From positions 578,879 to 642,878 of the forward strand of contig NIVC01000140.1 in the NCBI GenBank assembly GCA_002269645.1: 64,000 bases of DNA. Reading direction: 5' to 3'. The notes below the pieces were generated by a model. It was not told the DNA's origin and ran no database searches. It saw only the letters and a list, made by a program, of their open reading frames with translations. Positions 2,566 to 42,317 of the stretch are shown here, one piece after another. Position numbers and translations under genes: made by a program. Each line of letters begins with the position of its first letter. The first letter of the stretch is position 1. This stretch comes from Macrostomum lignano (Eukaryota).

Positions 2566-5019
2566 ATGTTGTGCATGTCAGGCTTTTCACCGCAACTGCA
2601 GGAGCGTCACGTGAGGTCGGTGCTCACCGGAGCTTTGCTGGACGTGTCCGGCTCCATGCAGCGCAGCTTCGACAGCCAGCAGGCAGCGGGCGCGGCCAGC
2701 TACGCATCGAAGAACAAGTGGGTCCGCTCCATCTTCAAGGTGGCCGACCAACTGGTCAAGCACGACGTGTCACCGACCAACCCGGTGTTCCTGGGCGGTG
2801 TGGGAGCTGAGTCACAGCCCACAGTGTTCGACATCCTGGCCTCACTGGAGGCTGGGCAGAAAGAGCTGGAGAGGAGAAAACCAGAGCTGGACCGTAAAAA
2901 GCAAGAGCTGGAGAGGGGAAAGCAAGAACTGGACAGGAAAAAGCAGGAGCTGGAAGATGAGGCCAGAAGAAAGAAGCAGGAGTATGAAGACCGAATAAAG
3001 AGGTTAGAATCTTCTTCAAAGCAATACATCATTGACCGAGCTCTCTCCATCCTTGAGTCCAGTGGAGCGCCGAGAGTTCGGAGTTGGGCCACAGCGAACA
3101 TGGTGGACAGGAATATAAGCGACAAGCGAACTGCCTGCGTCATTCTGGACGCTCTGCAAACCGACTCGGAATTCAAACGAAAAGTTGTTTATGAGTTTCT
3201 GCCTGAAGAGTGCCGAAATTTTCGCGTCGCGAGTGAAGTCGCTCACAGTCCCGCCACGAAATTCGCTGCGGTCGGAGCTGGAGTACTCGGTGGATTGCTG
3301 ACTGGGGGTTTGCCCCCTCTTGTGATGGGGGCGGCTGCAGCAACGACCGCGTTCGCGGCTGAAGAACAGTCGAAAAAGGCGACGGACTCCGAAGTAAGAG
3401 CTGTTGTGAACAAATGTGAAAACTTCCTTAACGACAAATTTCGAATTGAAGAAGAAGCAGAAAGAAGGAGAGCGGAGAATGAGCTGAGGCCATTGAGTAC
3501 AAATCTCACTGCACTGGCTGAAGATCTCAGAGCACTGACGAAAAATCTCACTGCAAATCTCATTGCACTGACTCATTCGTCTGTTTTTGCTCCTCATGAA
3601 GCTCAGAGAATCCTGCACTCCTGCAACGAAGACTCTGAGCTGACTGACCAGCGAATCAACGAGCTCATTGACACCATCGAGCCCTTCATCTACGGTCTCA
3701 CCCCGCTGATGCAGGCTCTCGAGACGTCTGAAAATATTTTTTGTAGCGAGAAACACAAAACTGAGTTCAAGCTGCTCTTCATCCTTTCTGATGGAGCGCC
3801 GTCGGACAACAGCGGCAGCCGAGACACTGAGATGCGACAGGCACTGCACAATCTCGGGGTGACGGTCGTGTCCTGCTTCATCACGGACACAGACATCTCT
3901 GACCCGCGACGGCTCTACAGCACTATCGACAGCGGCTGGGATCGACCTGCTGAATTTATGTTCCACATGGCCTCGACAGTCTCCACCCAGAAGGTCCCCA
4001 GAACCCTGTTCATCCGAAAGGGCTGGACAATCGACACCGACAACAATGAGACCCGACTGTTCTTCCAGATCAATCACCCCGACCTCATCGATGAGGTCTG
4101 CGACATCGCCAAGAGCTGCGTGTGCTCGCAGGACGCGCTGTCGGACGTGCTGGCCGACGTGGACCTCGACCTGTACATCAACAGGGCCAACGAGGGCTTC
4201 GAGACGCAGCGACAGTCGGAGCTCACCTGCTATGCAGTCGCGTCGGCGACCGTCATGCACCTGAGCATGCTCAGGGTTGTGGGTCGGGACGGCGGATATC
4301 CGGACTTCTTCCAGCTCAGAGACGAGATCGTCGCTCAGTTCGGACAGCGCAGAGCCCGCACAGTCGAGGTGCTGCGGACAGTGTGTCCGGAGTACCGGCT
4401 GCAGTGCAAGGAGGTCGATGAGAGAGCCGCGCTGGACGCCGTCATCGCCAAGCGGCCAGTCGTGGCCACATTCGGCCTCACTAAGAGCGAGTGGGGCAGC
4501 TTCAAGCAGTTCTTCAAGCAAAATCCCGAAGGCATTCTCACTCAGGCCGACCTCACCGGTGGACTCGGAGCTCGGGGAGACTCTGAGCTGCTCGGACACG
4601 CGGTGGTGCTGATGAGCTTCGACAGACACAGCCTGAGGCTGATGAACTCGTGGGGCTCCGGCTGGGGCGACGGCGGCTTCTTCAGAGTGCAGAGCGCAGC
4701 CGTGCTCAGGATGAAGTTCATCGATGTGTTCTGGACCGAGGAGCAGCTGACTGAGGCTGAGAGAGCCGCCTTCAGAGAGCGCGGACTGGGCGTTGCAGAG
4801 AGACTGTTTAAATCTCTGAAGGGTCTGCAGACATGCAAGTACAGGTGCCCGCTGTGCGGTGAGGAGTCTCTGGTGTCGGAGTTCTCGGGACACACGCTGG
4901 AGGCCAGGTGTCCCAAATGCAGGCGCAGCTTCAATGCGAACCTGGCGGGCAGCGACCTGGCGCTGAACCTGTACCTCACCTCGCTGCTGCACAAAGGGGA
5001 TAAGAAGACGCAGCAGTAG
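2566..5019 (+). CDS. VWA domain (split by coiled-coil/helical insert) - papain-like C1 cysteine peptidase - C-terminal CxxC..CxxC Zn ribbon protein, paralog 1
   Basis: MIDAS elements LLDVSGS, GLTPL and ILSDG. Papain-like motifs QRQSELTCYA (Cys), GHAVVL (His) and MNSWGSGWGDGGFFRV (Asn). CPLC-x17-CPKC. 817-aa uninterrupted ORF. The true 5' end may include an upstream exon. Confidence 0.9.
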   Translation: MLCMSGFSPQLQERHVRSVLTGALLDVSGSMQRSFDSQQAAGAASYASKNKWVRSIFKVADQLVKHDVSPTNPVFLGGVGAESQPTVFDILASLEAGQKELERRKPELDRKKQELERGKQELDRKKQELEDEARRKKQEYEDRIKRLESSSKQYIIDRALSILESSGAPRVRSWATANMVDRNISDKRTACVILDALQTDSEFKRKVVYEFLPEECRNFRVASEVAHSPATKFAAVGAGVLGGLLTGGLPPLVMGAAAATTAFAAEEQSKKATDSEVRAVVNKCENFLNDKFRIEEEAERRRAENELRPLSTNLTALAEDLRALTKNLTANLIALTHSSVFAPHEAQRILHSCNEDSELTDQRINELIDTIEPFIYGLTPLMQALETSENIFCSEKHKTEFKLLFILSDGAPSDNSGSRDTEMRQALHNLGVTVVSCFITDTDISDPRRLYSTIDSGWDRPAEFMFHMASTVSTQKVPRTLFIRKGWTIDTDNNETRLFFQINHPDLIDEVCDIAKSCVCSQDALSDVLADVDLDLYINRANEGFETQRQSELTCYAVASATVMHLSMLRVVGRDGGYPDFFQLRDEIVAQFGQRRARTVEVLRTVCPEYRLQCKEVDERAALDAVIAKRPVVATFGLTKSEWGSFKQFFKQNPEGILTQADLTGGLGARGDSELLGHAVVLMSFDRHSLRLMNSWGSGWGDGGFFRVQSAAVLRMKFIDVFWTEEQLTEAERAAFRERGLGVAERLFKSLKGLQTCKYRCPLCGEESLVSEFSGHTLEARCPKCRRSFNANLAGSDLALNLYLTSLLHKGDKKTQQ

Positions 5020-5290
5020 GCGCAGTGAAGCTTCTGGAGCTTTGTGCAGCGAATTGGTGACACAGAGCTGTTGACAAAATCTGACTAAATAAGAGTTCGC
5101 ATAGTTGCTCCCCAAACTGGAAACTTGCAACGTTTTTGTATGATGTCAAGCTTTTTCAGTTTATCAAGCTTTATCAGCTGTATCAGTTTTTCAGGGTTTT
5201 TTAACCTGCCCTCTAATTGTTTTAACCTGCAACATAAGTTCAGTATGTATAAAATATGAAAAAAACGAGTAATTAACTGCTGAAAGGTCT

Positions 5291-6033
5291 TGCACCATTA
5301 CCCAATATCCCATGCGTATCAGCCCAAATCCCAATGCGTTGCACCATTACCCAATATCCCATGCGTATCAGCCCAAATCCCAATGCGTTGCATCATTACC
5401 CAATATCCCATGCGTATCAGCCCAAATCCCAATGCGTTGCATCATTACCCAATATCCCATGCGTATCAGCCCAAATCCCAATGCGTTGCACCATTACCCA
5501 ATATCCCATGCGTATCAGCCCAAATCCCAATGCGTTGCACCATTACCCAATATCCCATGCGTATCAGCCCAAATCCCAATGCGTTGCACCATTACCCAAT
5601 ATCCCATGCGTATCAGCCCAAATCCCAATGCGTTGCACCATTACCCAATATCCCATGCGTATCAGCCCAAATCCCAATGCGTTGCATCATTACCCAATAT
5701 CCCATGCGTATCAGCCCAAATCCCAATGCGTTGCATCATTACCCAATATCCCATGCGTATCAGCCCAAATCCCAATGCGTTGCATCATTACCCAATATCC
5801 CATGCGTATCAGCCCAAATCCCAATGCGTTGCATCATTACCCAATATCCCATGCGTATCAGCCCAAATCCCAATGCGTTGCACCATTACCCAATATCCCA
5901 TGCGTATCAGCCCAAATCCCAATGCGTTGCATCATTACCCAATATCCCATGCGTATCAGCCCAAATCCCAATGCGTTGCATCATTACCCAATATCCCATG
6001 CGTATCAGCCCAAATCCCAATGCGTTGCATAAT
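5291..6033. repeat. 49-bp minisatellite, ~15 units
   Basis: Unit TGCACCATTACCCAATATCCCATGCGTATCAGCCCAAATCCCAATGCGT; the 49-aa periodicity in three frames confirms the period. Confidence 0.96.
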
Positions 6034-6765
6034 TACCCAGCATCCGAAGCCATTTTATGATTTTATCAAATAGGTAAATAAATAATTATTCAATAAATCG
6101 ATCATCAAGTATTCAGGCTCATACAATTGTAAACTCTGTTTCCGCTTAGAGTTTTTGTTAAAATAACATATGCGAGAGCACAATACTCCTCTTTGCTGCC
6201 CTAACCCTCTTGTGGTCCGGCAGCAAGTACTGCTGAGTGCAGCCCCTTTAGCGTGCTCACTGCGCGAGCATATAAGCCATTGATGTTTACAACTCTCCGA
6301 ACTCTTTTTGTTAGATCCCTGAGCTTCGACACAATGTCCAACTCAGCCAATATCTTTTTCTAGACACTAGGCACTGTGGACACGCAGTCTGCCAAAATGA
6401 TAGCTTAGGAGCGACTGTCATTGGTTATTGCGTCAAGCCCCAGTTGCTTGCATGTCCATGCAGTTTTACAAATTTCCTCTGTTTTAGCTTTAAAGTGCGG
6501 TGCGCACCTGTCAGGTGTGCGTTCGAGGTGCTCTCAGATTTTGCAGGCAAAACTGAAGTTCTCTTTCTAGTGTGCAGCTGTGGCAGCTGCAGTGGTCTAA
6601 ATATAAAACAACTCAAGCTCACTCCAGGGCTAACGAAATTCTAACTGGAAAGAAATTTCATTTGAAGTTTGATGAGAAAATATTTTTGCTTTAATTTTTG
6701 TAGTGTGAACTGGATTAGTCAAGTAGAGAGTCTGGTGGCGTGATAAAATTGGTTATTCATCTTTT

Positions 6766-7518: not shown

Positions 7519-8495
7519 TCTTTTAATAGCAGACAGAGGATAAAAACAGAGTGAGCAAAATAAATGCAGGGACAGTTCATTGGAAACCGCACCTCGCACA
7601 GAAGTTGTGTTCTCATAATCCAATGAGAACGCAAGAGCTGAAAAATCTCTGACCATCTCGCCACCGAGCGCAGAGAGAGCGCGGGCCGCAGCCTTGGCTC
7701 AGTTTAAACTGAGGCCTTTTTGTCTCAAGCGCATCATCTGCAAATTGCCCAGAGGCAAAACTGCAATATTTTATTTTGTTGCGTCAGTGGCTGTCATAAA
7801 TAAGAGTTCTCTCAGCCCTTGTATTTCAAGGGTTCACCGCAGTGTTAAATAAGAAAACAAGCAGTTTGTGAGGAGAGACGTCTGGCCTCACAATGCAGTG
7901 CTCGAACCGCTCACAGAGATTTAATTTCTATTTTTGTCTCTTTGCCAAGATGGAAGTTCAGTTAATAATGTGCGCAGCTGCCAGAGAAACCGGTTACAGA
8001 GGCCGTTTTCACCTGATCTGAGCAGCTGAGACCATGAAAATTAAACAATTCTAGTAGAAAGGAAGCTGCAAGGTGACTGGCATGCTACTCTCAGTAGTTA
8101 CTAACATAATTATTGATAATTCTTAATCATCTCAAGTCCCTTGCAATGATCCAGCTAGAAAGGAGAGAATTTAACCAGTTCAGACTGAACTTGGCAGCCT
8201 CTAGGCAGTCTGTGTACTTGGTAACTACCTGTAACAGACTGTACAGGTACGCTTTGGTTGAATTGTGCGCCTCTGGTAACTGCAACGCGACATGGCTACT
8301 CATCATCAGCCAAGACCGACTTACGCGCGATTCGGGATTTGAGAAGCTGAAATCTGAGATGAAACTCGCTGAGACGGCATTTTCTAAAACTTGTTGTAGT
8401 TTTATCGGTGAAAGAGCAGAAGCATTGAAATATGCATTCGATTGGTCTTTGTATTCCCATCTTCATGTCACTCTCTTCTCTTCCTCTTTTCTCCT

Positions 8496-10045
8496 CTCCC
8501 AGCTGCTTCTGTTCCCAATGCGATAATCTGCTGTCCTTGTCTCCCAGCTGCTTCTGTTCCCAATGCGATAATCAGCTGTCCTTGTCTCCCAGCTGCTTCT
8601 CTTCCCAATGCGATAATCAGCTGTCCTTGTCTCCCACCTGCTTCTGTTCCCAATGCGATAATCAGCTGTCCTTGTCTCCCAGCTGCTTCTCTTCCCAATG
8701 CGATAATCAGCTGTCCTTGTCTCCCAGCTGCTTCTCTTCCCAATGCGATAATCAGCTGTCCTTGTCTCCCAGCTGCTTCTCTTCCCAATGCGATAATCAG
8801 CTGTCCTTGTCTCCCAGCTGCTTCTGTTCCCAATGCGATAATCAGCTGTCCTTGTCTCCCAGCTGCTTCTCTTCCCAATGCGATAATCAGCTGTCCTTGT
8901 CTCCCAGCTGCTTCTCTTCCCAATGCGATAATCAGCTGTCCTTGTCTCCCAGCTGCTTCTCTTCCCAATGCGATAATCAGCTGTCCTTGTCTCCCAGCTG
9001 CTTCTCTTCCCAATGCGATAATCAGCTGTCCTTGTCTCCCAGCTGCTTCTCTTCCCAATGCGATAATCAGCTGTCCTTGTCTCCCAGCTGCTTCTGTTCC
9101 CAATGCGATAATCAGCTGTCCTTGTCTCCCAGCTGCTTCTCTTCCCAATGCGATAATCAGCTGTCCTTGTCTCCCAGCTGCTTCTCTTCCCAATGCGATA
9201 ATCAGCTGTCCTTGTCTCCCAGCTGCTTCTGTTCCCAATGCGATAATCAGCTGTCCTTGTCTCCCAGCTGTTTCTCTTCCCAATGCGATAATCTGCTGTC
9301 CTTGTCTCCCAGCTGCTTCTGTTCCCAATGCGATAATCTGCTGTCCTTGTCTCCCAGCTGCTTCTGTTCCCAATGCGATAATCAGCTGTCCTTGTCTCCC
9401 ACCTGCTTCTGTTCCCAATGCGATAATCAGCTGTCCTTGTCTCCCAGCTGCTTCTGTTCCCAATGCGATAATCAGCTGTCCTTGTCTCCCAGCTGCTTCT
9501 GTTCCCAATGCGATAATCAGCTGTCCTTGTCTCCCAGCTGCTTCTCTTCCCAATGCGATAATCAGCTGTCCTTGTCTCCCAGCTGCTTCTCTTCCCAATG
9601 CGATAATCAGCTGTCCTTGTCTCCCAGCTGTTTCTCTTCCCAATGCGATAATCAGCTGTCCTTGTCTCCCAGCTGCTTCTCTTCCCAATGCGATAATCAG
9701 CTGTCCTTGTCTCCCAGCTGCTTCTCTTCCCAATGCGATAATCAGCTGTCCTTGTCTCCCAGCTGCTTCTCTTCCCAATGCGATAATCAGCTGTCCTTGT
9801 CTCCCAGCTGCTTCTCTTCCCAATGCGATAATCAGCTGTCCTTGTCTCCCAGCTGCTTCTGTTCCCAATGCGATAATCAGCTGTCCTTGTCTCCCAGCTG
9901 CTTCTCTTCCCAATGCGATAATCAGCTGTCCTTGTCTCCCAGCTGCTTCTCTTCCCAATGCGATAATCAGCTGTCCTTGTCTCCCAGCTGCTTCTGTTCC
10001 CAATGCGATAATCAGCTGTCCTTGTCTCCCAGCTGCTTCTTTTCC
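8496..10045. repeat. 45-bp minisatellite, ~34 units
   Basis: Unit CCCAGCTGCTTCTSTTCCCAATGCGATAATCAGCTGTCCTTGTCT; 15-aa periodic ORFs. Confidence 0.97.
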
Positions 10046-10049
10046 CAAG

Positions 10050-10162
10050 GCACTGACTGGCACTGACTGGCACTGACTGGCACTGACTGGCACTGGTTGG
10101 CACTGACTGGCACTGACTGGCACTGACTGGCTCTGACTTGCACTGACTGGCACTGACTGACA
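10050..10162. repeat. 10-bp tandem repeat (GCACTGACTG)
   Basis: Directly visible. Confidence 0.92.
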
Positions 10163-11266
10163 CTTTCCAGTATCCGAGAGACAATCAAGCATTCACTGGA
10201 TTTAAAGAAATGAATGAGAAAAGAAAAGTACAGATTTCGACAATGTATTCCTACTTTACCGGCCTTCCATTTTTGTGAGGAACAAAGTATACTATCTGCT
10301 TTTATCATTTAGATTTTTGGATTTTGTTGTGGAATGAAAACATGGTAAAACGGAGACAGGGTCCCTGACGTATTTCTCTATGCATTTCGGACGTTTCAGA
10401 TGCTGCAAAGACCATCAGTAGCAGCGGCAGCACAATGCAATTTCTGACGGGTATCTTCTACTGGGAAAACGCAGTTTGCTGGTGTTGTGACACGGCCGTT
10501 AAACCGATCGTGTGCTTCCCAGTTATTCCCAAGAAATTCAGAGCAGTGATCACTTGATGGAGTCAGTCGCCCTGGCTAGACTGACTTCGGAATCAGATCG
10601 TTCGTCTCTATGACTTCGAGAGACGTGGTCAGCCCGTCCCTATGACTGTCCCGTACAATATGCAGGGTCACCCTCGAAGCAAACGAGCAGACACGCCCAA
10701 TTACTCACAATCAGCAGGCACATGCCCTGCCGGCTGCCCACACATCTTATATTTGGGTTCACAGATTTTTAGCCCCAGGGTCTGAAGACCCACGAGCTCA
10801 AGCCAGGTCGAAAATTACACGAAAACCAGCAGCCAATGAGAAGGCAGAAGAGAGCACAGGCAGCTGGGTGTTGACAGCTGGGGGCCGGTCAGCCAATCAC
10901 AGCAGAATGGGGGAGTGGGGCGGTCGCAGGTCTTGTGTGTAAACAACTCAGAGGGGCAGAGAAAATGGGGTGGGGCACAATCAAGTTAGCAGCTTAGGGG
11001 GCGCAGAGAGAAAGAAACGTGTTGCAGTGCAGTGCCGGGAACCCTTGACTGAGAGCCGGAGGTTGCTCATCAGTGCACCCGGGCACAGCGCTGCAAAAAA
11101 GACTTGCTTTGATTTATTTCGGTATTAAAACCTGAAATTATAAGCTGAACTTTATCGGCTATCAAGAAGATTCCAGACCTAAAAACTCGAATGTACATAC
11201 AGAATTGTTTATCAAAGCTCAAAAAGCTAAAAGCTTAACAGAAGCTTTATCAAATGCAATTTTCAA

Positions 11267-12185
11267 GGCGAATGATGCAATGCTGCATTAGTGAGGTGAA
11301 GCCGAGATATGCAATGCTGCATTAGTGAGGTGAAGGCGAGTGATGCAATGCTGCATTAGTGAGGTGAAGGCGAGTGATGCAATGCTGCATTAGTGAGGTG
11401 AAGCCGAGATATGCAATGCTGCATTAGTGAGGTGAAGGCGAGTGATGCAATGCTGCATTAGTGAGGTGAAGGCGAGTGATGCAATGCTGCATTAGTGAGG
11501 TGGATGCGAATGATGCAATGCTGCATTAGTGAGGTGAATGCGAGTGATGTGATGCTGCATTAGTGAGGTGAATGCGAATGATGTAATGCTGCATTAGTGA
11601 GGTGAATGCGAATGATGTGATGCTGTATTAGTGAGGTGAATGCGAATGATGTAATGCTGCATTAGTGAGGTGAATGCGAATGATGTGATGCTGTATTAGT
11701 GAGGTGAATGCGAATGATGCAATGCTGCATTAGTGAGGTGAATGCGAATGATGTGATGCTGTATTAGTGAGGTGAATGCGAATGATGTGATGCTGCATTA
11801 GTGAGGTGAAGGTGAATGATGTGATGCTGCATTAGTGAGGTGAAGGCGAGTGATGTGATGCTGCATTAGTGAGGTGAATGCGAATGATGTAATGCTGCAT
11901 TAGTGAGGTGAATGCGAATGATGTGATGCTGTATTAGTGAGGTGAAGGCGAGTGATGCAATGCTGCATTAGTGAGGTGGAGGCGAATGATGCAATGCTGC
12001 ATTAGTGAGGTGAAGGTGAATGATGTGATGCTGCATTAGTGAGGTGGGGTGAATGATGTGATGCTGCATTAGTGAGGTGGAAGCGAATGATGTGATGTTG
12101 TATTAGTGAGGTGAAGGCGAATGATGCAATGCTGCATAGTGAGGTGGAGGCGAATGATGCAATGTACACTGCAGAGGTGAAGGCG
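11267..12185. repeat. 33-bp satellite, second array
   Basis: Same GCTGCATTAGTGAGGTG core as 882-1917; precedes paralog 2. Confidence 0.95.
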
Positions 12186-12834
12186 CACCCGGTCAGCACT
12201 CACTCAATCTCGCACGCCCAGTGCATGATACTGTTTTAAATTCTAAATAATTTTTCCGGATATTTTAACTAAATAAAACAAACGTTAATTTCACTGGAAG
12301 GAAATCAACGTTTGAATGCTATTTGTTAAAGCAAATTAGAAATATTTTCCATTTACCTAAACTATTGGGTTTTTATTGAAGATTCCCATTTTCTATCTGC
12401 TGCGATAATCATTTTATACATATTAAAATTATTCCAGTCAGTGCTGCCAGTTCTCCTTAAGTAAAGCCACAACTTGAGCCAAAAATTGAAAGGATTCTCA
12501 ATGGTAAGCTGCACGAATTTTCTGCTTTCCGAAATTTAGGAAAAATTAAACAGAATGAACTGGTTGATCTTCCTCTCTTGAACAGAATGAAATATTTTTT
12601 CATTATCATAATTTCTATATCTTAAATTCACTAAGTACAAATATTTTATAATAAAGTTATTTATGTATCAGATGCTAAAATAGAATTAAAAGTACAAGAA
12701 TACAAGAAATAATTAATGGGTTCAGAAGCACCTTTATAGAATTTATGAATTGAAATCATATCATTATACAATGAACCACATAAATGAGCACTACTTCATG
12801 ATCTACAAATTTTAAACACACATTTTTAGCTACA

Positions 12835-15601: not shown

Positions 15602-15603
15602 CA

Positions 15604-19363: not shown

Positions 19364-19562
19364 CACGTGAGGTCGGTGCTCACCGGAGCTCTGCTGGACG
19401 TGCCCGGCTCCATGCAGCGAAGCTTCGACTGCCAGCAGATACGTATCGACGAACAAGTGGGTCCGCTCCATCTTCCAGGTGGCCAACCAGCTGGTCGAGC
19501 ACGACGTGTCACGGACAAACTAACGATGGCGTTCGACATCCTGGCCTCTCTGGGAGCTCGGC
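19364..19562 (+). pseudogene. Degenerate 5' fragment of the VWA-peptidase gene
   Basis: Nucleotide match to the first ~250 nt of the paralogs with deletions; MIDAS mutated to DVPGS; diagnostic bases (GCTCTG, TTCCAGG, CAGCTGGTCGAG) match paralog 3. Confidence 0.88.
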
Positions 19563-27276: not shown

Positions 27277-27602
27277 GCCCCCAGCGGGGGCTCTGCCCCC
27301 GCACCCCCGCTAGCAGCGGGTAATGTCTATAGTAATATCAATTATAACCTCCTTTTTTGGGCAGAATTTAAAATGGAAGAATCAAATAAGAATGAGATTC
27401 ATGCACGCCAACTCGTGCGTCTATGGCAAAGAGCACTCGTGCGCTTCTCGTGCCATAGACGCACGAGTTGGCGTGCATGAATCTCATTCTTATTTGATTC
27501 TTCCATTTTAAATTCTGCCCAAAAAAGGAGGTTATAATTGATATTACTATAGACATTACCCGCTGCTAGCGGGGGTGCGGGGGCAGAGCCCCCGCTGGGG
27601 GC

Positions 27603-28629
27603 GTGGGGGCTTCGCCCCCACATTTTAACCATAGACAAAATCAATCTTGCACGCTGGAGATGAAGAGGGGAGGGGGTAACGAAAGGAGATTACAATTGAA
27701 AGCTAGTTGCCACTATAAAAACATTTGCAACGCTTTCCTTCGATCTGGAGGAAGAGTGAAGCACTACGATGCTATTGAGAGTGACGACCTGAAGAAGCTC
27801 GGTAAATACTTCGATCGGTCGAATCCGGTGCGTCTTCAAGAGGAAGTATACTTTAACGTCATTTATTACTATGGGAATAGAGGCCGTGAATGGTTGCGTG
27901 GTTTGAGGTTTGATCGGTTTTGTGAGAAGCGGCTCGCCAATGGACTCTACGCGATTGAGCTTGTTCAGGGAGATTCAAAGAATCTACATGGTTCTACCAG
28001 CGTCGCCGTCATGGTTGACAACAAGCAAGCGTTGATGGTGTCAAAGGGAGATTCTGCCAAATGCCCAGTTGAGGCGTTCAGACTGTACAAGCAAAAGGTC
28101 ACCGAAGTTGAAGGATGGAACGGAGTGGACTTCTTTCTGCGACCAAACGCTAACTTTCGTTCATCTGGTAAGTGGTACGAGCTCGTACAGCAAGAGTGCA
28201 GTAGGAGTCAACACCCTTGGGCCTCTGATGAAGAAAATTTCTACGTCCGCCGGATTGTCCAAGCCATACACTGCGCATTGTGTGCGTGCAACTGTAATCA
28301 CAGAACTTCACGACGCTGGATTTAATGTCGAAACTATCGCTAAAGTGACTGGCCACAAGCGAGGTGCATCCGTTGAGCGCTACATTCGACGAGGGAATAA
28401 ACGAGAGCAAGCGATCTGTGCTATGAGCCATCAACTAACGGCTGCCGTGGAGGTGGCTACTACGGCCGACCCTCAAGTTGTAGGCACTGAGGCAAGTGAC
28501 CTAGTTGACGTTATCAACGATCCTACGTCGGGCTCGGTGCGCTGTGTGCGAGTTATTCCGGAAAATCGGAAGAATTTGAAGATTCGAGCCAATGGTGACA
28601 CCAACGTCATTGAATTTGTATTTGAGTAG
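27603..28629 (+). pseudogene. Crypton/DUF3504-type tyrosine recombinase, right arm (frameshifted)
   Basis: Mirror copy of the left arm; same R-K-HxxR-H-Y catalytic set and the same insertion at 28175-28188. Confidence 0.88.
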
Positions 28630-28820
28630 CATCTGATCGCAAGCGAAAAAATAGTAATGATATTAACCAATTTTCACTCGTTGTTTTCTTGTTGTCTAAA
28701 AATAAAGTGCAATCCTGCACGTAAGATGCATTAGACCTAAAGGATATTTTGCCATAGACAACATCAATTCTGCACGCTTGGGCGTGCCAGATCAGCAATC
28801 CTGCACGCAGAATCAAATAA

Positions 28821-28980
28821 GAATGATGTGATGCTGCATTAGTGAGGTGGGGTGAATGATGTGATGCTGCATTAGTGAGGTGGGGTGAATGATGTGATGC
28901 TGCATTAGTGAGGTGGGGTGAATGATGTGATGCTGCATTAGTGAGGTGGGGTGAATGATGTGATGCTGCACTGCAGAGGT
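28821..28980. repeat. 33-bp satellite, fourth (short) array abutting the palindrome
   Basis: Identical to the last units of the 882-1917 array; shares GAATG with the palindrome end. Confidence 0.92.
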
Positions 28981-29641
28981 GAAGGCGCACCCGGTCAGCA
29001 CTCACTCAATCTCGCACGCCCAGTGCATGATACTGTTTTAAATTCTAAATCATTTTCCGGATATTTTAACTCAATAAAACAAACGTTAATTTCACTGGAA
29101 GGAAATAAACGCTTGAATGCTATTTGTTAAAGCATATTAGAAATATTTTCCATTTACCTTAACTATTGGGCCTAATTGAATATTCCCATTTTCTATCTGC
29201 TGCGATAATTCATTTTATACAAAATTTGAATTACTCCAGTCAGTGCTGCCAGTTCTCTTTCAGTTAAGCCACAACTTGAGAAAAAAATTGAAAGGATTCT
29301 CAATGGTAAGCTGCACGAATTTTCTGTTTTCCGAAATTTAGAAAAAATTAAACAGAATGAACTGGTTGATCTTCCTCTCTTGAACAGAATGAAATATTTT
29401 TTCATTATCATAATTTCTATATCTTAAATTCACTAAGTACAAATATTTTATAATAAAGTTATCTATGTATCAGATGCTAAAATAGAATTAAAAGTACAAG
29501 AATACAAGAAATAATTAATGGGTTCAGAAGCACCTTTATAGAATTTATGAATTGAAATCATATCATTATACAATGAACCACATAAATGAGCACTACTTTA
29601 TGTTCTACAAATTTTAAACACACATTTTTAGCTACAATGTT

Positions 29642-31957
29642 GTGCATGTCAAGCTGAACTTTCCACCGCAACTGCAGGAGCGTCACGTGAGGTCGGTGCT
29701 CACCGGAGCTCTGCTGGACGTCTCCGGCTCCATGCAGCGCAGCTTCGACCGTCAGCAGGCAGCGGGCGCAGCCAGCTACGCATCGAAGAACAGGTGGGTC
29801 CGCTCCATCTTCCAGGTGGCCGACCAGCTGGTCGAGCACGACGTGTCACCGACCAACCAGGTGTTCCTGGGCGGTGTGGGAGCTGAGTCACAGCCCACAG
29901 TGTTCGACATCTTGGCCTCACTGGAGGCTGGGCAGAGAAAAAAGCCAGAGCTGGAGAGGAAAAAGAAAGAACTGGAGAGGAGAAAGCAAGAGCTGGAAGA
30001 TGAGGCCAGAAGAAAGAAGCAGGAGTATGAAGACCGAATAAAGAGGTTAGAATCTTCTTCAAAGCAATACATCATTGACCGAGCTCTCTCCATCCTTGAG
30101 TCCAGTGGAGCGCCGAGAGTTCGGAGTTGGGCCACAGCGAACATGGTGGACAGGAATATAAGAGACAAGCGAACTGCCTGCGTCATTCTGGACGCTCTGC
30201 AAACCGACTCGGAATTCAAACGAAAAGTTGTTGATGATTATCTGCCTGAGCAGTGCCGAAATTTTCACTGGGCGAGCGAAGCCGCGAGAGTCACTTCTGG
30301 ATTTCTTGGTTCGTTTGTGGGGTCAGAAGACCCGTTGTTGGGGACGGACTCCGAAGTTAGAGCTGTTGTGAACAAATGTGAAAACTTCCTTAACGCCAAA
30401 AAGAAGCAGAAAGAAACAGAAGTAAAAGCAGAAGTAGAAGCAGAAGCAGAAGCTGAAAGAAGGAGAGCGGAGAATGAGTTGAGGGCATTGAGTCCTTTGA
30501 CTCAGTTGACTCCTTTGTCCGTCTTTGCCCCAGATGAAGCTCAGAAAATCCTGCACTCCTGCAACGAAGACGCTGAGCTGACTGACGAGCGAATCACGGA
30601 GCTCCTGGACACCATCGAGCCCTTCATCTACGGAGGCACCCCGCTGATGGAGGCTCTCGAGACATCGAAAAATATTTTTTGTAGCGAGAAACGCAAAACT
30701 GAGTTCAAGCTGCTCTTCATCCTTTCTGATGGAGAGCCGGCGGACAGCAGCGGCAGCCGAGACACTGAGATGCGACAGAAACTGCACAATCTCGGGGTGA
30801 CGGTCGTGTCCTGCTTCATCACGGACACTGACATCTCTGACCCGCGACGGCTCTACAGCACACTCGACAGCGGCTGGGATCGACCTGCTGAATTTATGTT
30901 CCACATGGCCTCGACAGTCTCCACCCAGAAGGTCCCCAGAACCCTGTTCATCCGAAAAGGCTGGACAATCGACACCGACAACAATGAGACCCGACTGTTC
31001 TTCCAGATCAATCACCCCGACCTCATCGATGAGGTCTGCGACATCGCCAAGAGCTGCGTGTGCTCGCAGGACGCGCTGTCGGACGTGCTGGCCGACGTGG
31101 ACCTCGACCTGTACATCAACAGGGCCAACGAGGGCTTCGAGCCGCAGCGACAGTCGGAGCTCACCTGCTATGCAGTCGCGTCGGCGACCGTCATGCACCT
31201 GAGCATGCTCAGGGTTGTGGGTCGGGACGGCGGATATCCGGACTTCTTCCAGCTCAGAGACGAGATCGTCACTCAGTTCGGACAGCGCAGAGCCCGCACA
31301 GTCGAGGTGCTGCGGACAGTGTGCCCGGAGTACCGGCTGCAGTGCAAGGAGGTCGATGAGAGAGCCGCGCTGGACGCCGTCATCGCCAAGCGGCCAGTCG
31401 TGGCCACATTCGGCCTCACTAAGAGCGAGTGGGGCAGCTTCAAGCAGTTCTTCAAGCAGAATCCCGAAGGCATTCTCACTCAGTCCGACCTCACCGGTGG
31501 ACTCGGAGCTCGGGGAGACTCTGAGCTGTTCGGACACGCGGTGGTGCTGATGAGCTTCGACAGACACAGCCTGAGGCTGATGAACTCGTGGGGCTCCGGC
31601 TGGGGCGACGGCGGCTTCTTCAGAGTGCAGAGCGCAGCCGTGCTCAGGATGAAGTTCATCGATGTGTTCTGGACCGAGGAGCAGCTGACTGAGGCCGAGA
31701 GAGCCGCCTTCAGAGAGCGCGGACCGGGCGTCGCTGAAAAGCTGTTCGCCTCACTGAAGGGTCTGCAGACATGCATGTACAGGTGCCCGCTGTGCGGTGA
31801 GGAGTCTCTGGTGTCGGAGTTCTCGGGACACACGCTGGAGGCCAGGTGTCCCAAATGCAGGCGCAGCTTCGATGCGAACCTTGCGGGCAGCGACCTGGCG
31901 CTGAACCTGTACCTCACCTCGCTGCTGCACAAAGGGAATAAGAAGACACAGCAGTAG
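29642..31957 (+). CDS. VWA - coiled coil - papain-like peptidase - Zn ribbon protein, paralog 3
   Basis: 771-aa open frame with all catalytic and MIDAS motifs. The ATG at 29637 is put out of frame by a net +5-nt change, so the start is uncertain (splice acceptor at 29677 likely, or 5'-damaged gene). Confidence 0.82.
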   Translation: MHVKLNFPPQLQERHVRSVLTGALLDVSGSMQRSFDRQQAAGAASYASKNRWVRSIFQVADQLVEHDVSPTNQVFLGGVGAESQPTVFDILASLEAGQRKKPELERKKKELERRKQELEDEARRKKQEYEDRIKRLESSSKQYIIDRALSILESSGAPRVRSWATANMVDRNIRDKRTACVILDALQTDSEFKRKVVDDYLPEQCRNFHWASEAARVTSGFLGSFVGSEDPLLGTDSEVRAVVNKCENFLNAKKKQKETEVKAEVEAEAEAERRRAENELRALSPLTQLTPLSVFAPDEAQKILHSCNEDAELTDERITELLDTIEPFIYGGTPLMEALETSKNIFCSEKRKTEFKLLFILSDGEPADSSGSRDTEMRQKLHNLGVTVVSCFITDTDISDPRRLYSTLDSGWDRPAEFMFHMASTVSTQKVPRTLFIRKGWTIDTDNNETRLFFQINHPDLIDEVCDIAKSCVCSQDALSDVLADVDLDLYINRANEGFEPQRQSELTCYAVASATVMHLSMLRVVGRDGGYPDFFQLRDEIVTQFGQRRARTVEVLRTVCPEYRLQCKEVDERAALDAVIAKRPVVATFGLTKSEWGSFKQFFKQNPEGILTQSDLTGGLGARGDSELFGHAVVLMSFDRHSLRLMNSWGSGWGDGGFFRVQSAAVLRMKFIDVFWTEEQLTEAERAAFRERGPGVAEKLFASLKGLQTCMYRCPLCGEESLVSEFSGHTLEARCPKCRRSFDANLAGSDLALNLYLTSLLHKGNKKTQQ

Positions 31958-32755
31958 CGCAGTGGCATTTTATATTGAAAGCTTCCATTTGGAAAATCGC
32001 ATCGGAGCTTTGAGCTGTGCCCAATTGTGACAAACTTTATTCAGTTTTGTGTCTACCATTTGGGGTCTAATAAGAGAAGCTGTCGGAGAGAGGACATCGA
32101 ATTATCGATTGATTTGCATGCTGGCGATTGCACGATAACCAATCATTTTCCAGTAAATCACAATTATATTCACGTTTTTTATTCTAATATCAACCTGAAT
32201 TGATTTAAAACTTGCGATTTTCTCCCACCGAGATGACTACTTTTGATACCTGTGATTGTAATTTTATAACTTTGCTAAAATTCAAACATTTCTCTTGATA
32301 ATTTTCGCTTTCGAAATCTATTCCTGCCAGTTTAACAATAACAAATCATGAAATGCTTTGCCAATATGCAGCAGAGGCCGGAAGCTGAGATGGAAGTTCC
32401 ACTCCTTGCTTCTGGCGAAAGGCTTTGATGCTGGCTGATAGCAAATCTTTATGACTGTTTCTTTAGAAAACCTGCGCCTATTTCTGCGCATCCAGCTGGC
32501 AATGGCTGGGTGGCTATCATAGCGATCTCAGTGCTGCAGAACCGCAGTGCTTTTACTGCCGTTGCAGTGTCTGAACGGAAAGTTTGCCTGATTTTCACAC
32601 ACTAATAAAATTCGTTCGATATACACTTGCTGCTCACTCTGTTAACAGTAGTCTCGTTGGGTCTTTTTTGTTGTCTCTTGTCTAAATGTAAAAGTGAGCA
32701 TTCTGAGAACATGTTCATAGATATGGACATAGAGAAGCGGAACTTCCCTGGCTAC

Positions 32756-32821
32756 AGCCATGTTGTACAGCCATGTTGTACAGCCATGTTGTACTGCCAT
32801 GTTGTACAGCCATGTTGTACT
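32756..32821. repeat. 13-bp tandem repeat (AGCCATGTTGTAC) x5
   Basis: Directly visible. Confidence 0.88.
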
Positions 32822-33002
32822 ACTGCGAGCCAATTAACGCAGATGCGAGAAGCGATTGCAGGGTAGAAAAGTCACAGAGGCTTGGAAGGCTGGTGCGCAC
32901 ATGCATTTATAGTTTAAAGATAACTGGCATGATTTAACAAACATTCAAAACCACTGCGCAGCCTAGGCCGTAGGTGTATCGGTAGATGCAGGCCTACCGG
33001 TA

Positions 33003-33214
33003 GATAGCCAGCTGTCGCTTGAGCTCGGCGAAGGCAGAGTCGCACTCGCTCTTCCAGAGGAAGGCGGTGTCCTACAGCTCTCGCAGTGATATCGCTGTCT
33101 TTGCAAAGTCAGGGATGAAATGACGCATTAATCCCCATTGCGCTGGGATGCGGATCACCTCTTTGACGGTCGAACTCCACCAGCTGAAATCCCGTAGGGC
33201 CCAGGAACTCGGCC
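33003..33214 (-). mobile_element. Ty3/Gypsy pol remnant (RT thumb/connection)
   Basis: Minus strand reads ...EFLG...TVKEV...RHFIPDFAKTAISLREL*DTAFLWKSECDSAFAELKRQL, matching the Gypsy 'rrFIpdfa..a.pL..l....f.W..ec..AF..lK' pattern. Confidence 0.6.
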
Positions 33215-34318
33215 TGGCATTACTCCTGGTGCACTGTCAGCCTCTTTTCGCTGAGTCCTTCTGAGTCCTCCTGAAGGACTCAGACCGCCTGAAGCTGCTT
33301 GCTGTGCTCATCCGAGTTGACAGCAGGTGTTCAAGGGTTAGCAGTAATGCAAAACATTTCATAACAAAAATAGAATAACATTAAAACTGAACCATTGGGT
33401 CACTGATTAATATGCTCCTGCCATTGGGTGCTAAACTTCCATGTATACCCAGGACAAAGAGCATCTGGTAAATCTGGGGACTGTGCACGAAATTTTCACT
33501 GCAATCTACACCCACAATCTACACCCATCCACTTCTTTTGTAATTGTTATTTTTCAATATTCTCTGTACCTGAATATTCTACTAATAATCCAGCGCACTT
33601 TTGATAATAATAATAGCGGTAGCCATTCAGGCAGCTCTGGTAGGTGTTTTTGAAAGCCTACTTTAAGTAGTGCTAGAACGAATCAGTACCGAACCTTCAA
33701 ATTGTGAAATATAGTTTGTTTTTTGGCCTTTTATCGTCGGCAACTTTAAGCTAGCTGAAAATTTGAACCTAAAATTTCGAATTGGCTGCTTACAGAGTGC
33801 AGTCTAACATAGCTCAAGGACGAATTAAGGAGTCCTTGAACAACAGAAAAGCATAGGAAATTCAGTCCCATACTTTGTGCGAATTTAGAAACAAAGAACT
33901 GTGCGGACTCTGCAGTTGTTCCTACTTGTTAGCTTTCCTGGAAAACTGTCTACTGGCTGATCTTCAGCTGTCTTCAGTCCAAACCGAAACACGGAACTAA
34001 ATGAACAGTCATTTTTTGCTCTACTGGTGCAGTGTCTCTGAGCGTCTCAAAAAGGGAACTTTGAATGTACATTTAAACCGGGAGGAACTCGAACAGTGGC
34101 AAAATAAGCTGAGCCAATGAGGGTAGCGCCAGTCATACGAGTAGCTGCACTTTGATCATCTTTTTTACATTCCCAATTAAGTCTGCTTCCTCTTGGTACC
34201 TGCTGGAAAACCATTGTCTCAGATATACCTGTTTAAACTTCTGAGAAGACTTGCTAAGGCTATAGGTAGAGCTGTTTCCATAGAATACGGTGGACCACAA
34301 GCAGTAGACATCGGAGTC

Positions 34319-35230
34319 ATGGCTGAGAAGCTGGGAGAGATCGGCGACGTCCTGAGCGGCATCAGCAAGGCTGTCACGACGATGAAGTCGCTCCGAGACG
34401 ATAGAACCGAGCTGTACAGAGTTATCGAGCAAACGAAGAAGCACGCCGGCGTGGTGGAGCAACTCGACCTGCCCAATGAGCCGCAGCTGAAGGAACTGAA
34501 GCTGCAGCTGGTAGAAGTGCGGAGCTCCGGATCCAAGCTGGAAGTCTGGCTCCAGAGCTTCGGGAAAGAAATCCAAGTGTTCGAGAGATTCGTAACAACA
34601 AAAATCAAGAGCAGCATCCCTCCAGAAGTAGTCAGAGAGTTCTGTGAGATGCTCATCTCTACTCATAGAATGGCGAGCGACTTCTCAGCCGCATTCGATG
34701 ACTTCATCGGCCACTTGCTCAAAGCACAGAAAATCGCCACGCAACTCACTGATAAGCTGAAGCAGAAAGCGGATGAGCAGGAGAAGAAAGCGAACAGCAC
34801 GAGAAACAGGGGAGCGGCAGCGACTACCGGCCTGGCGATCGGAGCGATCGGTCTCGCGGCTCTCGGCTTCTTCACCGGCGGACTCGCCTGGATTGCCGCT
34901 GGCGCCGCTGCTGGTTGTGTGGTTGGGGCCGGTGTGGCGGCCAGGAAAACTGTGGTCGACGTGAAGGCGATGCGTGAGCTGGCCAGAGGCTTCAGAGACG
35001 ACTCAAACCAACTGGAAGTCATCGCCAAGCAGCTGGAGAGCAGCGGAGACAAAGCCGAAACCATCCAGCTGGACAAGAAGGCGATCGAAGCGCTGCAGAC
35101 CGCACTGGAATTCTTTCGCAAAGACCTGGAGAAGGACGACCGCATCGCTCTGCAGCAGGAGCAGCTCGATGAGCAGAGGGCAGAGATCGCCGAGTTGAAG
35201 AACAAGATGAGGATTCAAGGCATCAAATAG
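34319..35230 (+). CDS. Helical protein with Gly/Ala-rich hydrophobic hairpin (ApoL-like / ClyA-Hbl-like candidate), paralog B, 303 aa
   Basis: Alignable end to end with paralog A (e.g. GSKLEVWLQSF/GSHLEVWINSF, MASDFS/MACDFS, AIEALQTALEFF/AIKALRTALQFF). Hydrophobic AAATTGLAIGAIGLAALGFFTGGLAWIAAGAAAGCVVGAGVAA. Confidence 0.82.
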   Translation: MAEKLGEIGDVLSGISKAVTTMKSLRDDRTELYRVIEQTKKHAGVVEQLDLPNEPQLKELKLQLVEVRSSGSKLEVWLQSFGKEIQVFERFVTTKIKSSIPPEVVREFCEMLISTHRMASDFSAAFDDFIGHLLKAQKIATQLTDKLKQKADEQEKKANSTRNRGAAATTGLAIGAIGLAALGFFTGGLAWIAAGAAAGCVVGAGVAARKTVVDVKAMRELARGFRDDSNQLEVIAKQLESSGDKAETIQLDKKAIEALQTALEFFRKDLEKDDRIALQQEQLDEQRAEIAELKNKMRIQGIK

Positions 35231-36169
35231 GTGGAATATTCCTACGTAACATTCTTTTAACTAAACTAACTAACTTTTTACTTAATTACTTGATTTACTC
35301 TACTTACAACTAACACGGGATACTGAAAATTATTGATTCAATTATTTATTGAATTTATTTTCGTCATCTGCCGTATTTTTATTGTTAAAACTATGTATTC
35401 ATCCCTGTCTCAAAAAGCTGTCAATTTACTCTTGTGACTACTTTAAATGGTACATCACTATGTATCCTAGTCAACTCTATCCAATTATATTAAATTCTCT
35501 CTGTGTTCAAATTTTAGATCTCTAAGCGTTTAATAACCTTTAACAATTTAAACTTCTCTCGTACTCGACACAAATCTTGTATAAGTGCCTGGAAGCTGAC
35601 TAAATTATTGATCTGGTCCACCTTTTTATCTAAACTGTGAGTAAAAATGCTCACATGAAGTGGCACTTTCTATTTTGTAGCTTTTTTCTAACTCACTCAA
35701 ATAGTATTGAACAAAACTTGACAAACTACTAAAATATACTATTAAACATAAAAATAGAGAAATATTAAACTTCGAAATCCAATTTTTTAAAATAGGCTCA
35801 TATGGAAAACCCAGAGTTTTTTCCCTGCTTTTTCAACAGGGAACTTCGAGCCGCACATTGTACTTTTAGCTGTGCCTTTATCCAGGAGGTCCGAGACACC
35901 CAGGAGTTGGCATCTAAGACAAATTGGTCATTGTACCAACATAGGGCTGACTGAGACCCTGCGAGCTGTCAGGGGAGGCTAAACTAACACTCCCTCATCA
36001 AGAGCTGCTGGTTGCGTGTTGGTTCAACAACTCTCTGCCTTCCCACGGCCCAGTTGGGAAGAGCAATAGAGGATCGAACCAAGGACCACCAGGCGATTCC
36101 ACAGTGCATTGGCGATCACCCAAGGAGAGCTATAGTTCGCTTATAGTACAACAGTGTGAATATCGGAAG

Positions 36170-36297
36170 TGAGCTGGAGATGTAAGCTGGAGATGTGAGC
36201 TGGAGATGTGATCTGGAGATGTAAGCTGGAGATGTGAGCTGGAGATGTGAGCTGGAGATGTGAGCTGGAGATGTGAGCTGGAGATGTGAGCTGGAGA
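36170..36297. repeat. 13-bp tandem repeat (GAGCTGGAGATGT)
   Basis: Directly visible. Confidence 0.88.
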
Positions 36298-37099
36298 TTA
36301 TTATAAACATATTAGATATTAAACAGTGTACTGTGAAATGCAAGCAAAATGCAATCTCTAACAAGGTACCAGCAAGGGGGGCAAATGGCAATTTAAACCG
36401 ACGGACTCTGTGACATCCGCCAGTTTTCGTTTCGCTTAGGCCTGGCGTGGAAGCGGCCAGCTTCCTCGTTTTGGTCTGCTGCTGAAGGACGAATCCCCCT
36501 GCTGCCTTTATGCAGGGCAGGTGGCTGCTAAGCAGTTGGCTGCTGGCTAAGCGCCAACTACCCATCAACAGCCCATAGTTGCAACTGGTACAACGCGGGT
36601 TCTCGAGAGCCTGTGGGGGAGGGCTCGGGCGTCGGCTGTCAACCGGACCTGGCGCCTGTGTCCCAAGCCCGCAGCCGGCCTCCCGCCCCTGATCTTGCAG
36701 AGTGTGGACCGGGTGCCTGCCGGAGCCTCGCCTGGGAGCAATCCTGGGTTAAGACGGCAACCCAAAGCTTCTCTGCTGTTTACCGTGGCAGAGGGTAGCT
36801 CCACGGAGCTGGCTGGGGGTATATCCAGTCCCCAAGCGGTTACCACCCCTCCCATTTTTCTACATTTCAGTTTTTCTTTTCCAGACTACTCTACATAGAT
36901 AATTCAAAACCTGACGCGGCTCGGGAACCGACATTGCCCGCGGCGGGGGTCCGTCAATCCCCAAACCCTCCAACAGGGAGGTTGACTCTGCCGCGAACCC
37001 CGCGGAAACCCCCGCACCTCGTGTCCAGGTGCGTCTACCTCCACCCCCGCTGCACGGGCATCTCAAAATGACGGCTTTCAGGTCGTCACCCGTCGCAGG

Positions 37100-37229
37100 C
37101 GCGATGAGAAAACCTTGGCTGGCCCTGAGCAAAAAATGGCAGCGGCCAGACGAGCGCACCGATCCCTCGTTGGACCTCAAAAGGCAAATTGAATTGAAGG
37201 CCAAGATGAGGATGCACGGCATCGAATAG
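37100..37229 (+). pseudogene. Probable 3' remnant of a third hydrophobic-hairpin paralog
   Basis: Ends ELKAKMRMHGIE* vs paralog B ELKNKMRIQGIK*, with matching nucleotides (AAGATGAGGAT..A.GGCATC.AATAG); upstream similarity is weak. Confidence 0.5.
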
Positions 37230-42303: not shown

Positions 42304-42317
42304 GCAGCAGCAGTTCC

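Follow-up and report, generated by a model that had tools for sequence, protein, structure and literature searches.

Two gene families, VWA-papain and hairpin, in a repeat-rich cluster of Macrostomum lignano

The locus and its genes

Macrostomum lignano is a free-living flatworm in whose genome repeats make up more than half of the sequence (PMC5730564). The window analyzed here, the final 64 kb of contig NIVC01000140.1 (642,878 bp) of assembly Mlig_3_7 (GCA_002269645.1), carries in its first 37 kb the members of two gene families, one encoding proteins with a VWA domain and a papain-like peptidase domain (VWA-papain), the other encoding proteins with a Gly/Ala-rich hydrophobic hairpin (hairpin proteins). 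They are interleaved in the order VWA1, VWA2, psiVWA, hairpin-A, VWA3, hairpin-B and psi-hairpin (Table 1). A sequence-only reading of this DNA had listed the seven elements in this order and had proposed that they form a two-component system, in which a sensor-protease cleaves a pore-former-like hairpin protein. All seven were found by translation, tblastn and blastn.

The same reading had described both families as intron-free, and every intact copy is indeed one uninterrupted open reading frame (ORF), colinear with full-length homologs. Its statement that intact genes of these two families only are present stood in so far as a Pfam scan of the remaining ORFs of at least 90 codons in 1-37 kb gave no match beyond the two families and transposon debris; it is in doubt for VWA3, the intactness of which is uncertain owing to an indel of 5 nucleotides (nt). 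The birth-and-death turnover it had noted is evident from psiVWA, from psi-hairpin, from a stop codon in a hairpin-A copy to the left of the window and from the start defect of VWA3. In psi-hairpin, positions 37190-37229 match the last 13 codons of hairpin-B (85% over 39 nt; blastn), and 37190-37428 together with 37702-37826 match the 3' end and flank of the hairpin paralog P0126 on contig L006 (76% over 251 nt, E 3e-26).

Table 1. Features of the window (TRF, tandem-repeat program; aa, amino acids)
Feature	Position	Strand	Remarks
VWA1	2566-5019	+	ORF of 817 aa, uninterrupted (translation)
MIDAS motif D26-V-S28-G-S30 of VWA1	2641-2655	+	
Cys555 codon of VWA1	4228-4230	+	predicted catalytic; partners Q550, H678 (4597-4599), N694 (4645-4647)
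Zinc ribbon of VWA1	4846-4920	+	C761, C764, C782, C785
VWA2	12835-15192	+	ORF of 785 aa, uninterrupted; 87% aa identity to VWA1
psiVWA	19364-19582	+	fragment, aa ~15-104 of a VWA-papain gene only (tblastn)
hairpin-A	22186-20918	-	422 aa
VWA3	29642-31957	+	open frame of 771 codons; 83% aa identity to VWA1
hairpin-B	34319-35230	+	303 aa; 40% identity to hairpin-A
psi-hairpin	37190-37428	+	last 13 codons and 3' flank of a P0126-like paralog; remainder of gene missing
20-nt satellite	2-477		TRF; end of left copy of the block psiVWA, hairpin-A, 20-mer
34-nt satellite	882-1917		TRF; ~650 bp upstream of VWA1
49-nt satellite	5290-6039		TRF; directly downstream of VWA1
45-nt satellite	8495-10048		TRF; 34.5 copies
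34-nt satellite	11265-12185		TRF, self-blastn; upstream of VWA2
20-nt satellite	23252-24015		TRF; between hairpin-A and VWA3
34-nt satellite and diverged orphan copy of a VWA upstream region	24842-26024		satellite part 24842-25445
Perfect inverted repeat	26054-28825		arms 26054-27428 and 27451-28825; tyrosine-recombinase fragments
34-nt satellite	28821-28970		precedes VWA3
Broken retroelement	40889-44567	+	outside the gene cluster; Pfam RVT_1 1e-20, RNase_H 1e-12 to 1e-13

The two protein families

VWA1 is composed of a VWA domain with a metal-ion-dependent adhesion site (MIDAS), which is split by a coiled-coil insert (aa ~90-345), a papain-like C1 peptidase domain (aa ~546-725) and a C-terminal CxxC...CxxC zinc ribbon. 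Across an alignment of 30 homologs from several phyla, three MIDAS residues (D26, S28 and S30) never vary, nor do three residues of the papain-type site (C555, H678 and N694); conservation is 90% or more at the other two MIDAS positions, T379 and D409, and at Q550 of the papain-type site, whose four residues follow the order and spacing of papain. All four zinc-ribbon cysteines are likewise invariant, and the matches to Zn_ribbon families of Pfam are weak. With phmmer the block GHAV...NSWG.GWG..G of VWA1 aligned to papain and cathepsin C (E 1.5e-4 to 3e-3). VWA1-3 score 17.6-18.2 bits with PF00112, below the gathering cut-off of 20.7, and the homologs P0024, P0037, P0045 and P0051 carry precomputed PF00112 matches. 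The Pfam VWA scores of the proteins in the window are 13-17 bits as compared to a cut-off of 27, and many homologs have precomputed PF00092 or PF13519 matches.

An AlphaFold2 model of VWA1 (mean predicted local distance difference test, pLDDT, 72.7) displays a Rossmann-like beta-alpha pattern. Foldseek aligned this model to papain, ervatamin and cathepsin B at E 8e-5 to 1e-3, with target-normalized template-modeling (TM) scores of 0.28-0.54 (0.38-0.54 for the full-length papain and ervatamin matches), and to the integrin alpha2 I-domain and the MIDAS domain of MDN1 at E 0.02-0.07 and target TM scores of 0.45-0.47. The earlier assignment of a VWA and a papain domain is thus borne out by the complete MIDAS and papain-type sites in the alignment and by the papain match at E 8e-5.

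The interruption of the VWA domain falls after the third strand. The insert of ~250 aa is coiled-coil or helical; in the model two helices of ~57 residues interrupt the domain as a stalk that bears a small helical domain on top. At the tip of the insert VWA1 has an uncharged Gly/Ala-rich stretch, FAAVGAGVLGGLLTGGLPPLVMGAAAATTAFAA (aa 233-265; window 3262-3360), at the position of which VWA2 and VWA3 have a deletion. Nine of the 123 family members, VWA1 included, carry an equivalent hydrophobic stretch of 26-39 residues there, and these members belong to different clades; the stretch of VWA1 may be a facultative membrane anchor. Homology of the insert to the hairpin or apolipoprotein L (ApoL) proteins, which would amount to a single-chain version of the proposed system, was rejected: the hhalign probability was 0.3%, and searches of the 123 members with hidden Markov models (HMMs) yielded composition-level matches only (E at least 0.006 in this set of 123 sequences).

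At its N-terminus VWA1 leads straight into the beta1/MIDAS strand of the VWA domain, and most homologs begin 7 residues before DVSGS. No signal peptide or propeptide is evident there, as judged without a dedicated signal-peptide predictor, and the protein is therefore probably cytosolic, like bleomycin hydrolase and unlike the lysosomal or secreted enzymes of the papain family.

Among 5.8 billion proteins searched, more than 170 relatives had E up to 0.001; the best 120 of them all have E values below 1e-155. The relatives listed are 680-850 aa long and share 40-56% identity, usually over 97% of the length. They stem from the corals Acropora millepora, A. muricata, A. digitifera and Montipora, from the annelid Owenia fusiformis, from the nemertean Tubulanus and from numerous ENA assemblies, including at least one Tara metagenome; every relative that has a name is labeled "uncharacterized". 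Pattern scans of 185,579 prokaryotic genomes and of the IMG/VR viral contigs did not find the full architecture, the prokaryotic scan yielding only a generic VWA segment in two metagenome-assembled genomes. In PADLOC there was no hit for VWA1 or VWA3 and otherwise coiled-coil noise only. Within the reach of these scans (the 185,579 genomes, IMG/VR and PADLOC) a bacterial or viral origin of the family was rejected. The combination of VWA, papain and zinc ribbon is not described in a 2020 survey of vWA-containing conflict systems in eLife (PMC7159879), and among the ORFs of the window scanned there is neither a MoxR AAA+ ATPase gene nor a VMAP gene, as would belong to a vWA-MoxR ternary system. 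Literature searches for the VWA-papain architecture, for APOL-like genes of Macrostomum and for Mlig gene identifiers returned nothing relevant.

In comparison with papain (MEROPS C1/PF00112), VWA-papain has the Gln-Cys-His-Asn site, the block "GHAV...NSWG..WG..GFFR" and the predicted fold in common; it differs in that the peptidase lies C-terminal to a VWA domain and is followed by a zinc ribbon, and in the lack of an evident signal peptide and propeptide. With the integrin I-domain it shares the complete DxSxS...T...D MIDAS, but not the continuity of the domain, which is split by the insert. From these sequences and models, VWA-papain is a metazoan family of probably cytosolic proteins with a MIDAS-competent VWA domain, a papain-type (C1) cysteine peptidase predicted to be active and a zinc ribbon.

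Hairpin-A consists of an N-terminal helical region, a Gly/Ala-rich hydrophobic hairpin, further helices and a coiled-coil repeat of about six 14-aa units ("DDRIAQLETEG"). It is 94% identical to PAA56324.1 of M. lignano. The C-terminal units, "EKDDRIAQLETEG[LV]", are encoded by a 42-nt tandem repeat at 21104-21353 (TRF). The hairpin-A in the window is one unit shorter than the other two copies (436 aa each), so the length of the coiled-coil tail is polymorphic. Hairpin-B has an uncharged Gly/Ala-rich hairpin of 44 residues (aa ~165-208) with the turn "FFTGG", followed by a C-terminal coiled coil. Its AlphaFold2 model (pLDDT 70.8) is made up of five long helices with the hydrophobic hairpin, modeled at low confidence, between helices 3 and 4; the helices downstream of the hairpin span residues 215-246 and 253-299.

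A word-indexed search with a hairpin protein found a single relative. When 1.84 billion representatives were searched exhaustively with an HMMER profile, 14 matches had E up to 0.001: eight strong ones, all from M. lignano, three proteins of ~300 aa from Logan assemblies of SRA data, and three further proteins, P0131, P0133 and P0132, with whole-library E values of 1.5e-4 to 3.2e-4. These last three score 26.1, 31.1 and 23.8 bits, respectively, with the ApoL family of Pfam, the gathering threshold of which is 25.9, so that P0132 falls just under it. Because no unrelated Gly-zipper protein is among the 14, a purely compositional match is argued against. When the hairpin alignment was compared by hhalign with a four-sequence alignment of the ApoL-like proteins, the probability was 96.8% over 147 columns, which span the helix before the hairpin, the hairpin with its "FTGG" turn aligned, and the helices after it. 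The score was 78 as compared to 43 for a reversed-template control and at most 16.4 for each of 20 column shuffles. In the reciprocal direction the ApoL-like HMM gave scores of 30-40 bits and matched hairpin-B, P0124 and P0121 at 37-40 bits. A homology search for ApoL relatives seeded with P0133 added one sequence only.

Two observations weigh against this relationship. The hydrophobic hairpin itself contributes a large part of the ApoL profile score, and the Pfam ApoL model gives no score for hairpin-A or hairpin-B at E up to 1, nor for hairpin-B at E up to 10. ApoL is also absent from the 25 Pfam families matched most often over 11 members of the hairpin family, which is therefore not an ApoL member at the Pfam level. 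Other identities in Pfam or the PDB were rejected as sub-threshold coiled-coil or transmembrane noise (SLATT_1, Holin-X, SesA, Prominin).

The APOL proteins have a transmembrane hairpin, downstream helices, a C-terminal leucine-zipper helix and pore activity (PMC7891394). The hairpin proteins resemble ApoL (PF05461; APOL1, APOL3) in size (~300-400 aa), in being all-helical with a Gly/Ala-rich transmembrane hairpin that has a short central turn, in the helices and coiled coil or leucine zipper that follow, and in being multi-copy and fast-evolving. They differ in their N-terminal ~160 aa, for which no similarity to the N-terminal domain of APOL was detected, and the only named organism known to have the family is M. 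lignano. The best natural fold matches of the hairpin-B model in Foldseek are alpha-pore-forming toxins of the ClyA family (ClyA, AhlB, SmhB), which have in common with it a five-helix bundle of ~300 aa and a hydrophobic "head" between helices 3 and 4. These matches are weak (E 8e-3 to 0.1, TM 0.3-0.45), de novo designed helical bundles score equally well, and there is no significant sequence similarity (the hairpin profile against the PDB gives HlyE at E 0.11). The hairpin family thus probably comprises divergent APOL-like membrane-inserting proteins, and the earlier label "pore-former-like" is a reasonable one, since besides its own family and the three Logan proteins the hairpin profile matched ApoL proteins only.

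Three tandem hairpin paralogs lie at 2493-3407, 5039-5869 and 9983-10846 of locus L001 (NIVC01000020.1, 1062583-1083428), the middle one without annotation; the paralogs P0124 and P0127 are on the same contig of 1.55 Mb, which therefore appears to hold the main hairpin cluster of the M. lignano genome.

Duplication history and state of the copies

The region to the left of the window was read from L004 (NIVC01000140.1, 566296-611064), the reverse complement of which is identical to the window over its first 32,186 nt. The array extends into this flank with a second hairpin-A copy and a second psiVWA. The hairpin-A copy (L004 33459-34766, ~1.3-2.6 kb left of position 1) has 96.7% nt identity to that in the window and a stop at codon 16. 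The block psiVWA, hairpin-A and 20-mer satellite at 18500-24015 matches positions -6241 to +477 at 96-98.7%, the two 20-nt satellites themselves being about 93% identical. The blocks of 34-mer satellite, upstream region and VWA ORF share 93-96% identity and extend as far as the stop codon; in self-blastn, 1001-3242 matched 11265-13520 (93%) and 1751-3242 matched 28821-30285 (94.5%), and 1312-2502 matched 24842-26024 at 77%, the latter being an orphan copy that ends 64 nt before the expected ATG. From these matches, a head-to-head cassette of ~12 kb underwent a single duplication, and VWA2 is a further copy of just its VWA half. The 34-nt satellite is found ~650 bp upstream of every VWA-papain gene as part of the duplicated unit, and the 20-nt satellite adjoins each hairpin-A copy (2-477 and 23252-24015).

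Hairpin-A and hairpin-B, at 40% identity, are far older than the VWA copies. The old divergence indicates that the hairpin genes formed an old cluster, like that of L001, and that a VWA-papain gene came to be placed within it. The same arrangement is repeated on contig L003, where hairpin-A has 97.9% nt identity; this contig is best read as homeologous or haplotypic redundancy, which fits the 180 Mb of duplicated non-repetitive blocks of at least 95% identity in Mlig_3_7 (PMC5730564).

Those 180 Mb, the repetition of the locus on L003, a perfect palindrome of 1375-nt arms and the position of the window at a contig end could all suggest that the local expansion is inflated by assembly, through uncollapsed haplotypes or homeologs or through PacBio palindromes. 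Against this, VWA1, VWA2 and VWA3 lie in one contig, are 4-7% apart at the nt level and have different insert structures and 3' flanks; hairpin-A and hairpin-B are only 40% identical; and a VWA3-like gene stands beside a hairpin-B-like one in an independent older assembly, too (P0123). We regard inflation by assembly as a very remote explanation.

The divergence among the VWA copies is mosaic, the N-terminus being identical in VWA1 and VWA2 and the papain domain nearly identical in VWA1 and VWA3, as is typical of gene conversion. The pairwise ratio of non-synonymous to synonymous substitution rates (dN/dS) is 0.47-0.63, with 0.63 for VWA1 versus VWA2. Replacements are very rare in the linker and papain regions, and the insert is the most divergent part. 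Positive selection on the insert was rejected, as its dN/dS is 0.48-0.72 and dS is raised too, which points to older or unconverted sequence rather than to demonstrable positive selection. As read from sequence, VWA1-3 are a recent local amplification of one ancestral copy, with 93-96% nt identity, gene-conversion mosaics and relaxed constraint. For hairpin-A versus the L003 copy, dN/dS is 0.27.

VWA3 has 5 extra nt just past the ancestral ATG (29618-29665 versus VWA1 2566-2600), which lead to a TGA after 6 codons, and its long ORF has no in-frame ATG upstream of the MIDAS motif. VWA3 may need another start or may be a very young pseudogene. The VWA copy on L003 has the same N-terminal variant (LKLNFSP...), which may therefore be a real allele type with another start or exon and not a sequencing error.

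The gene annotation of Mlig_3_7 rests on transcript evidence (PMC5730564). For window positions 1-32186 GenBank has a hairpin gene model only and no coding sequence for VWA1-3, which hints at low expression or mapping ambiguity. The hairpin model, PAA89764.1 (P0136), is chimeric: it joins the start of one hairpin-A copy to the body of the other through a 23 kb "intron" that bypasses the stop. In UniRef, A0A1I8I0H8 (P0123), a "ribonuclease H" of 3511 aa that maps to window 29678-47593, is a fusion of three unrelated genes: aa 37-809 resemble VWA3 (96.6%), aa 1029-1317 resemble hairpin-B (92%), and the remaining component is reverse transcriptase/RNase H of a retroelement. The chimeric NCBI model, the fused UniRef protein and the unannotated VWA-papain ORFs are errors of the public record that deserve a flag.

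The missing gene models, together with the relaxed constraint, the out-of-frame ATG of VWA3, the presence of a psiVWA fragment and an orphan upstream copy, and the satellites and tyrosine-recombinase palindrome that flank the genes, raise the question whether the VWA-papain copies are decaying or non-functional duplicates at a rearranging contig end, only the hairpin genes being at work. However, three ORFs of 771-817 codons have stayed open with all catalytic, MIDAS and zinc-ribbon residues intact, dN/dS is clearly below 1, replacements in the linker and papain regions are few, and multi-mapping among copies that are 93-96% identical could by itself suppress transcript models. We therefore hold general decay of the VWA-papain genes to be unlikely.

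The palindrome sits between the orphan VWA upstream copy and the true upstream region of VWA3. Its two 1375-nt arms are 100% complementary and separated by a 22-nt spacer, and each encodes tyrosine-recombinase fragments (Pfam Phage_integrase 1.7e-7, weak DUF3504); it is either a very recent Crypton/DIRS-like foldback or a long-read assembly palindrome. At 8495-10048, long ORFs overlap on the two strands because of the 45-nt satellite. In the right half of the window there are a retroelement with RVT_1 and two RNase_H segments in several frames (GC up to 65%), a 2.7 kb array of 21/42-nt repeats (52120-54817), a 48-nt satellite (58803-59266) and an ORF (60303-61199) for a protein with an Endonuclease VII-like domain (Pfam 4.6e-8), whose upstream neighbor ORF (59377-60357) has no Pfam match.

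Linkage of the two families and its interpretation

Conserved co-occurrence or synteny of the two families was a check that the sequence-only reading had itself proposed, and the reading failed it: linkage was found only at this locus and on the redundant contig L003. VWA-papain occurs in at least four phyla, the hairpin family confidently in M. lignano only. In Owenia (L009) the VWA-papain gene is a solitary single-exon gene adjoining a Na/Ca exchanger gene, and a eukaryotic ENA contig (L008) has three tandem VWA-papain genes; within 10 kb of either there is no hairpin homolog or hairpin-like ORF. Conversely, tblastn found no VWA-papain gene within 10 kb of the five other hairpin loci of M. 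lignano, namely L001 with its three tandem paralogs, L002, L005, L006 (two) and L007 (two). Since the interleaving stems from one duplicated cassette and a redundant contig, it amounts to one linkage event and carries no statistical weight. Cleavage of a hairpin protein by a VWA-papain sensor-protease is thus left without comparative support, the linkage being confined as described, and a protease/pore-former two-gene system is not supported by these sequence comparisons.

On balance we favor the reading that the locus is a lineage-specific, repeat-rich cluster of two separate families and not a conserved two-gene system. A hairpin cluster (hairpin-A, hairpin-B and psi-hairpin) would have received a VWA-papain gene, placed head-to-head with hairpin-A, and the block of ~12 kb, with psiVWA, hairpin-A on the minus strand, the 20-mer, the 34-mer and a VWA gene on the plus strand, would then have been duplicated. 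The hairpin family would be the older one, restricted to Macrostomum, of ~300 aa and all-helical, residing elsewhere in the genome in small tandem clusters of its own. Each family would act separately in processes of the innate-immunity or cell-death type, the MIDAS of the VWA domain binding a protein ligand and presenting it to the peptidase, and the hairpin proteins inserting into membranes, as APOLs do.

Several points weigh against such a separation. Each of the three copies seen retains the head-to-head pair of hairpin-A and a VWA gene, a psiVWA flanks hairpin-A on its other side, and hairpin-B is 2.4 kb downstream of VWA3; this tight local association could reflect shared regulation. The count of one linkage event covers the loci fetched, rather than the whole M. 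lignano genome or other species of Macrostomum, and the VWA-papain loci inspected outside the flatworms are two, each with 10 kb on either side. A fast-evolving helical partner could, moreover, escape sequence detection in other phyla.

The two families could also be a functional pair in Macrostomum only, the VWA domain and insert sensing a signal, the peptidase cleaving the APOL-like hairpin protein and the product inserting into membranes. It would agree with this that the two genes of the head-to-head cassette were duplicated together and persist as such on the redundant contig, that three hairpin subfamilies (hairpin-A, hairpin-B and P0126-like) lie within 37 kb of VWA genes, that the active-site and MIDAS residues are intact, that the hairpin proteins resemble a known pore-forming family, and that both families undergo birth-and-death turnover. 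Yet among the loci examined there is no co-occurrence beyond this one, most hairpin paralogs are unlinked to VWA genes, and the unit of VWA2 was duplicated without a hairpin partner. VWA-papain is kept in phyla without a detectable hairpin family, so its ancestral substrate must have been something else. The transcript-based annotation has hairpin models and no VWA models, which does not favor constitutive co-expression. Finally, deletion of the C-terminal leucine-zipper helix of APOL1 inactivates pore formation rather than activating it (PMC7891394). A functional pair appears quite improbable to us.

Still harder to credit is the narrower proposal that a MIDAS-gated cytosolic papain-type protease was recruited in Macrostomum as activator or regulator of an APOL-like effector within the head-to-head, co-duplicating cassette. 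If true, it would mean an animal protease/pore-former immune module unrelated to caspase/gasdermin and would be the first indication of proteolytic control over APOL-type proteins. The likeness to caspase/gasdermin is one of general idea only, a protease gene beside the gene of a membrane-active protein in an expanding locus; the window has no gasdermin-like fold or sequence and no caspase-type protease, and the linkage of the genes is not conserved. Coupling could reasonably be sought at this locus, which is not in itself evidence of it.

Both families are probably of the immunity type, their copy-number turnover being typical of immunity genes. The architecture of VWA (MIDAS), coiled-coil stalk, papain and zinc ribbon is a conserved one, encoded by several, mostly intronless, gene copies in corals, annelids, nemerteans and the flatworm; without a name and undescribed in the literature searched, it is a new but modest finding. 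The hairpin family, if confirmed, extends the APOL-type membrane effectors into the Platyhelminthes, and since M. lignano is amenable to transgenesis (PMC5730564), APOL-like proteins could be studied there.

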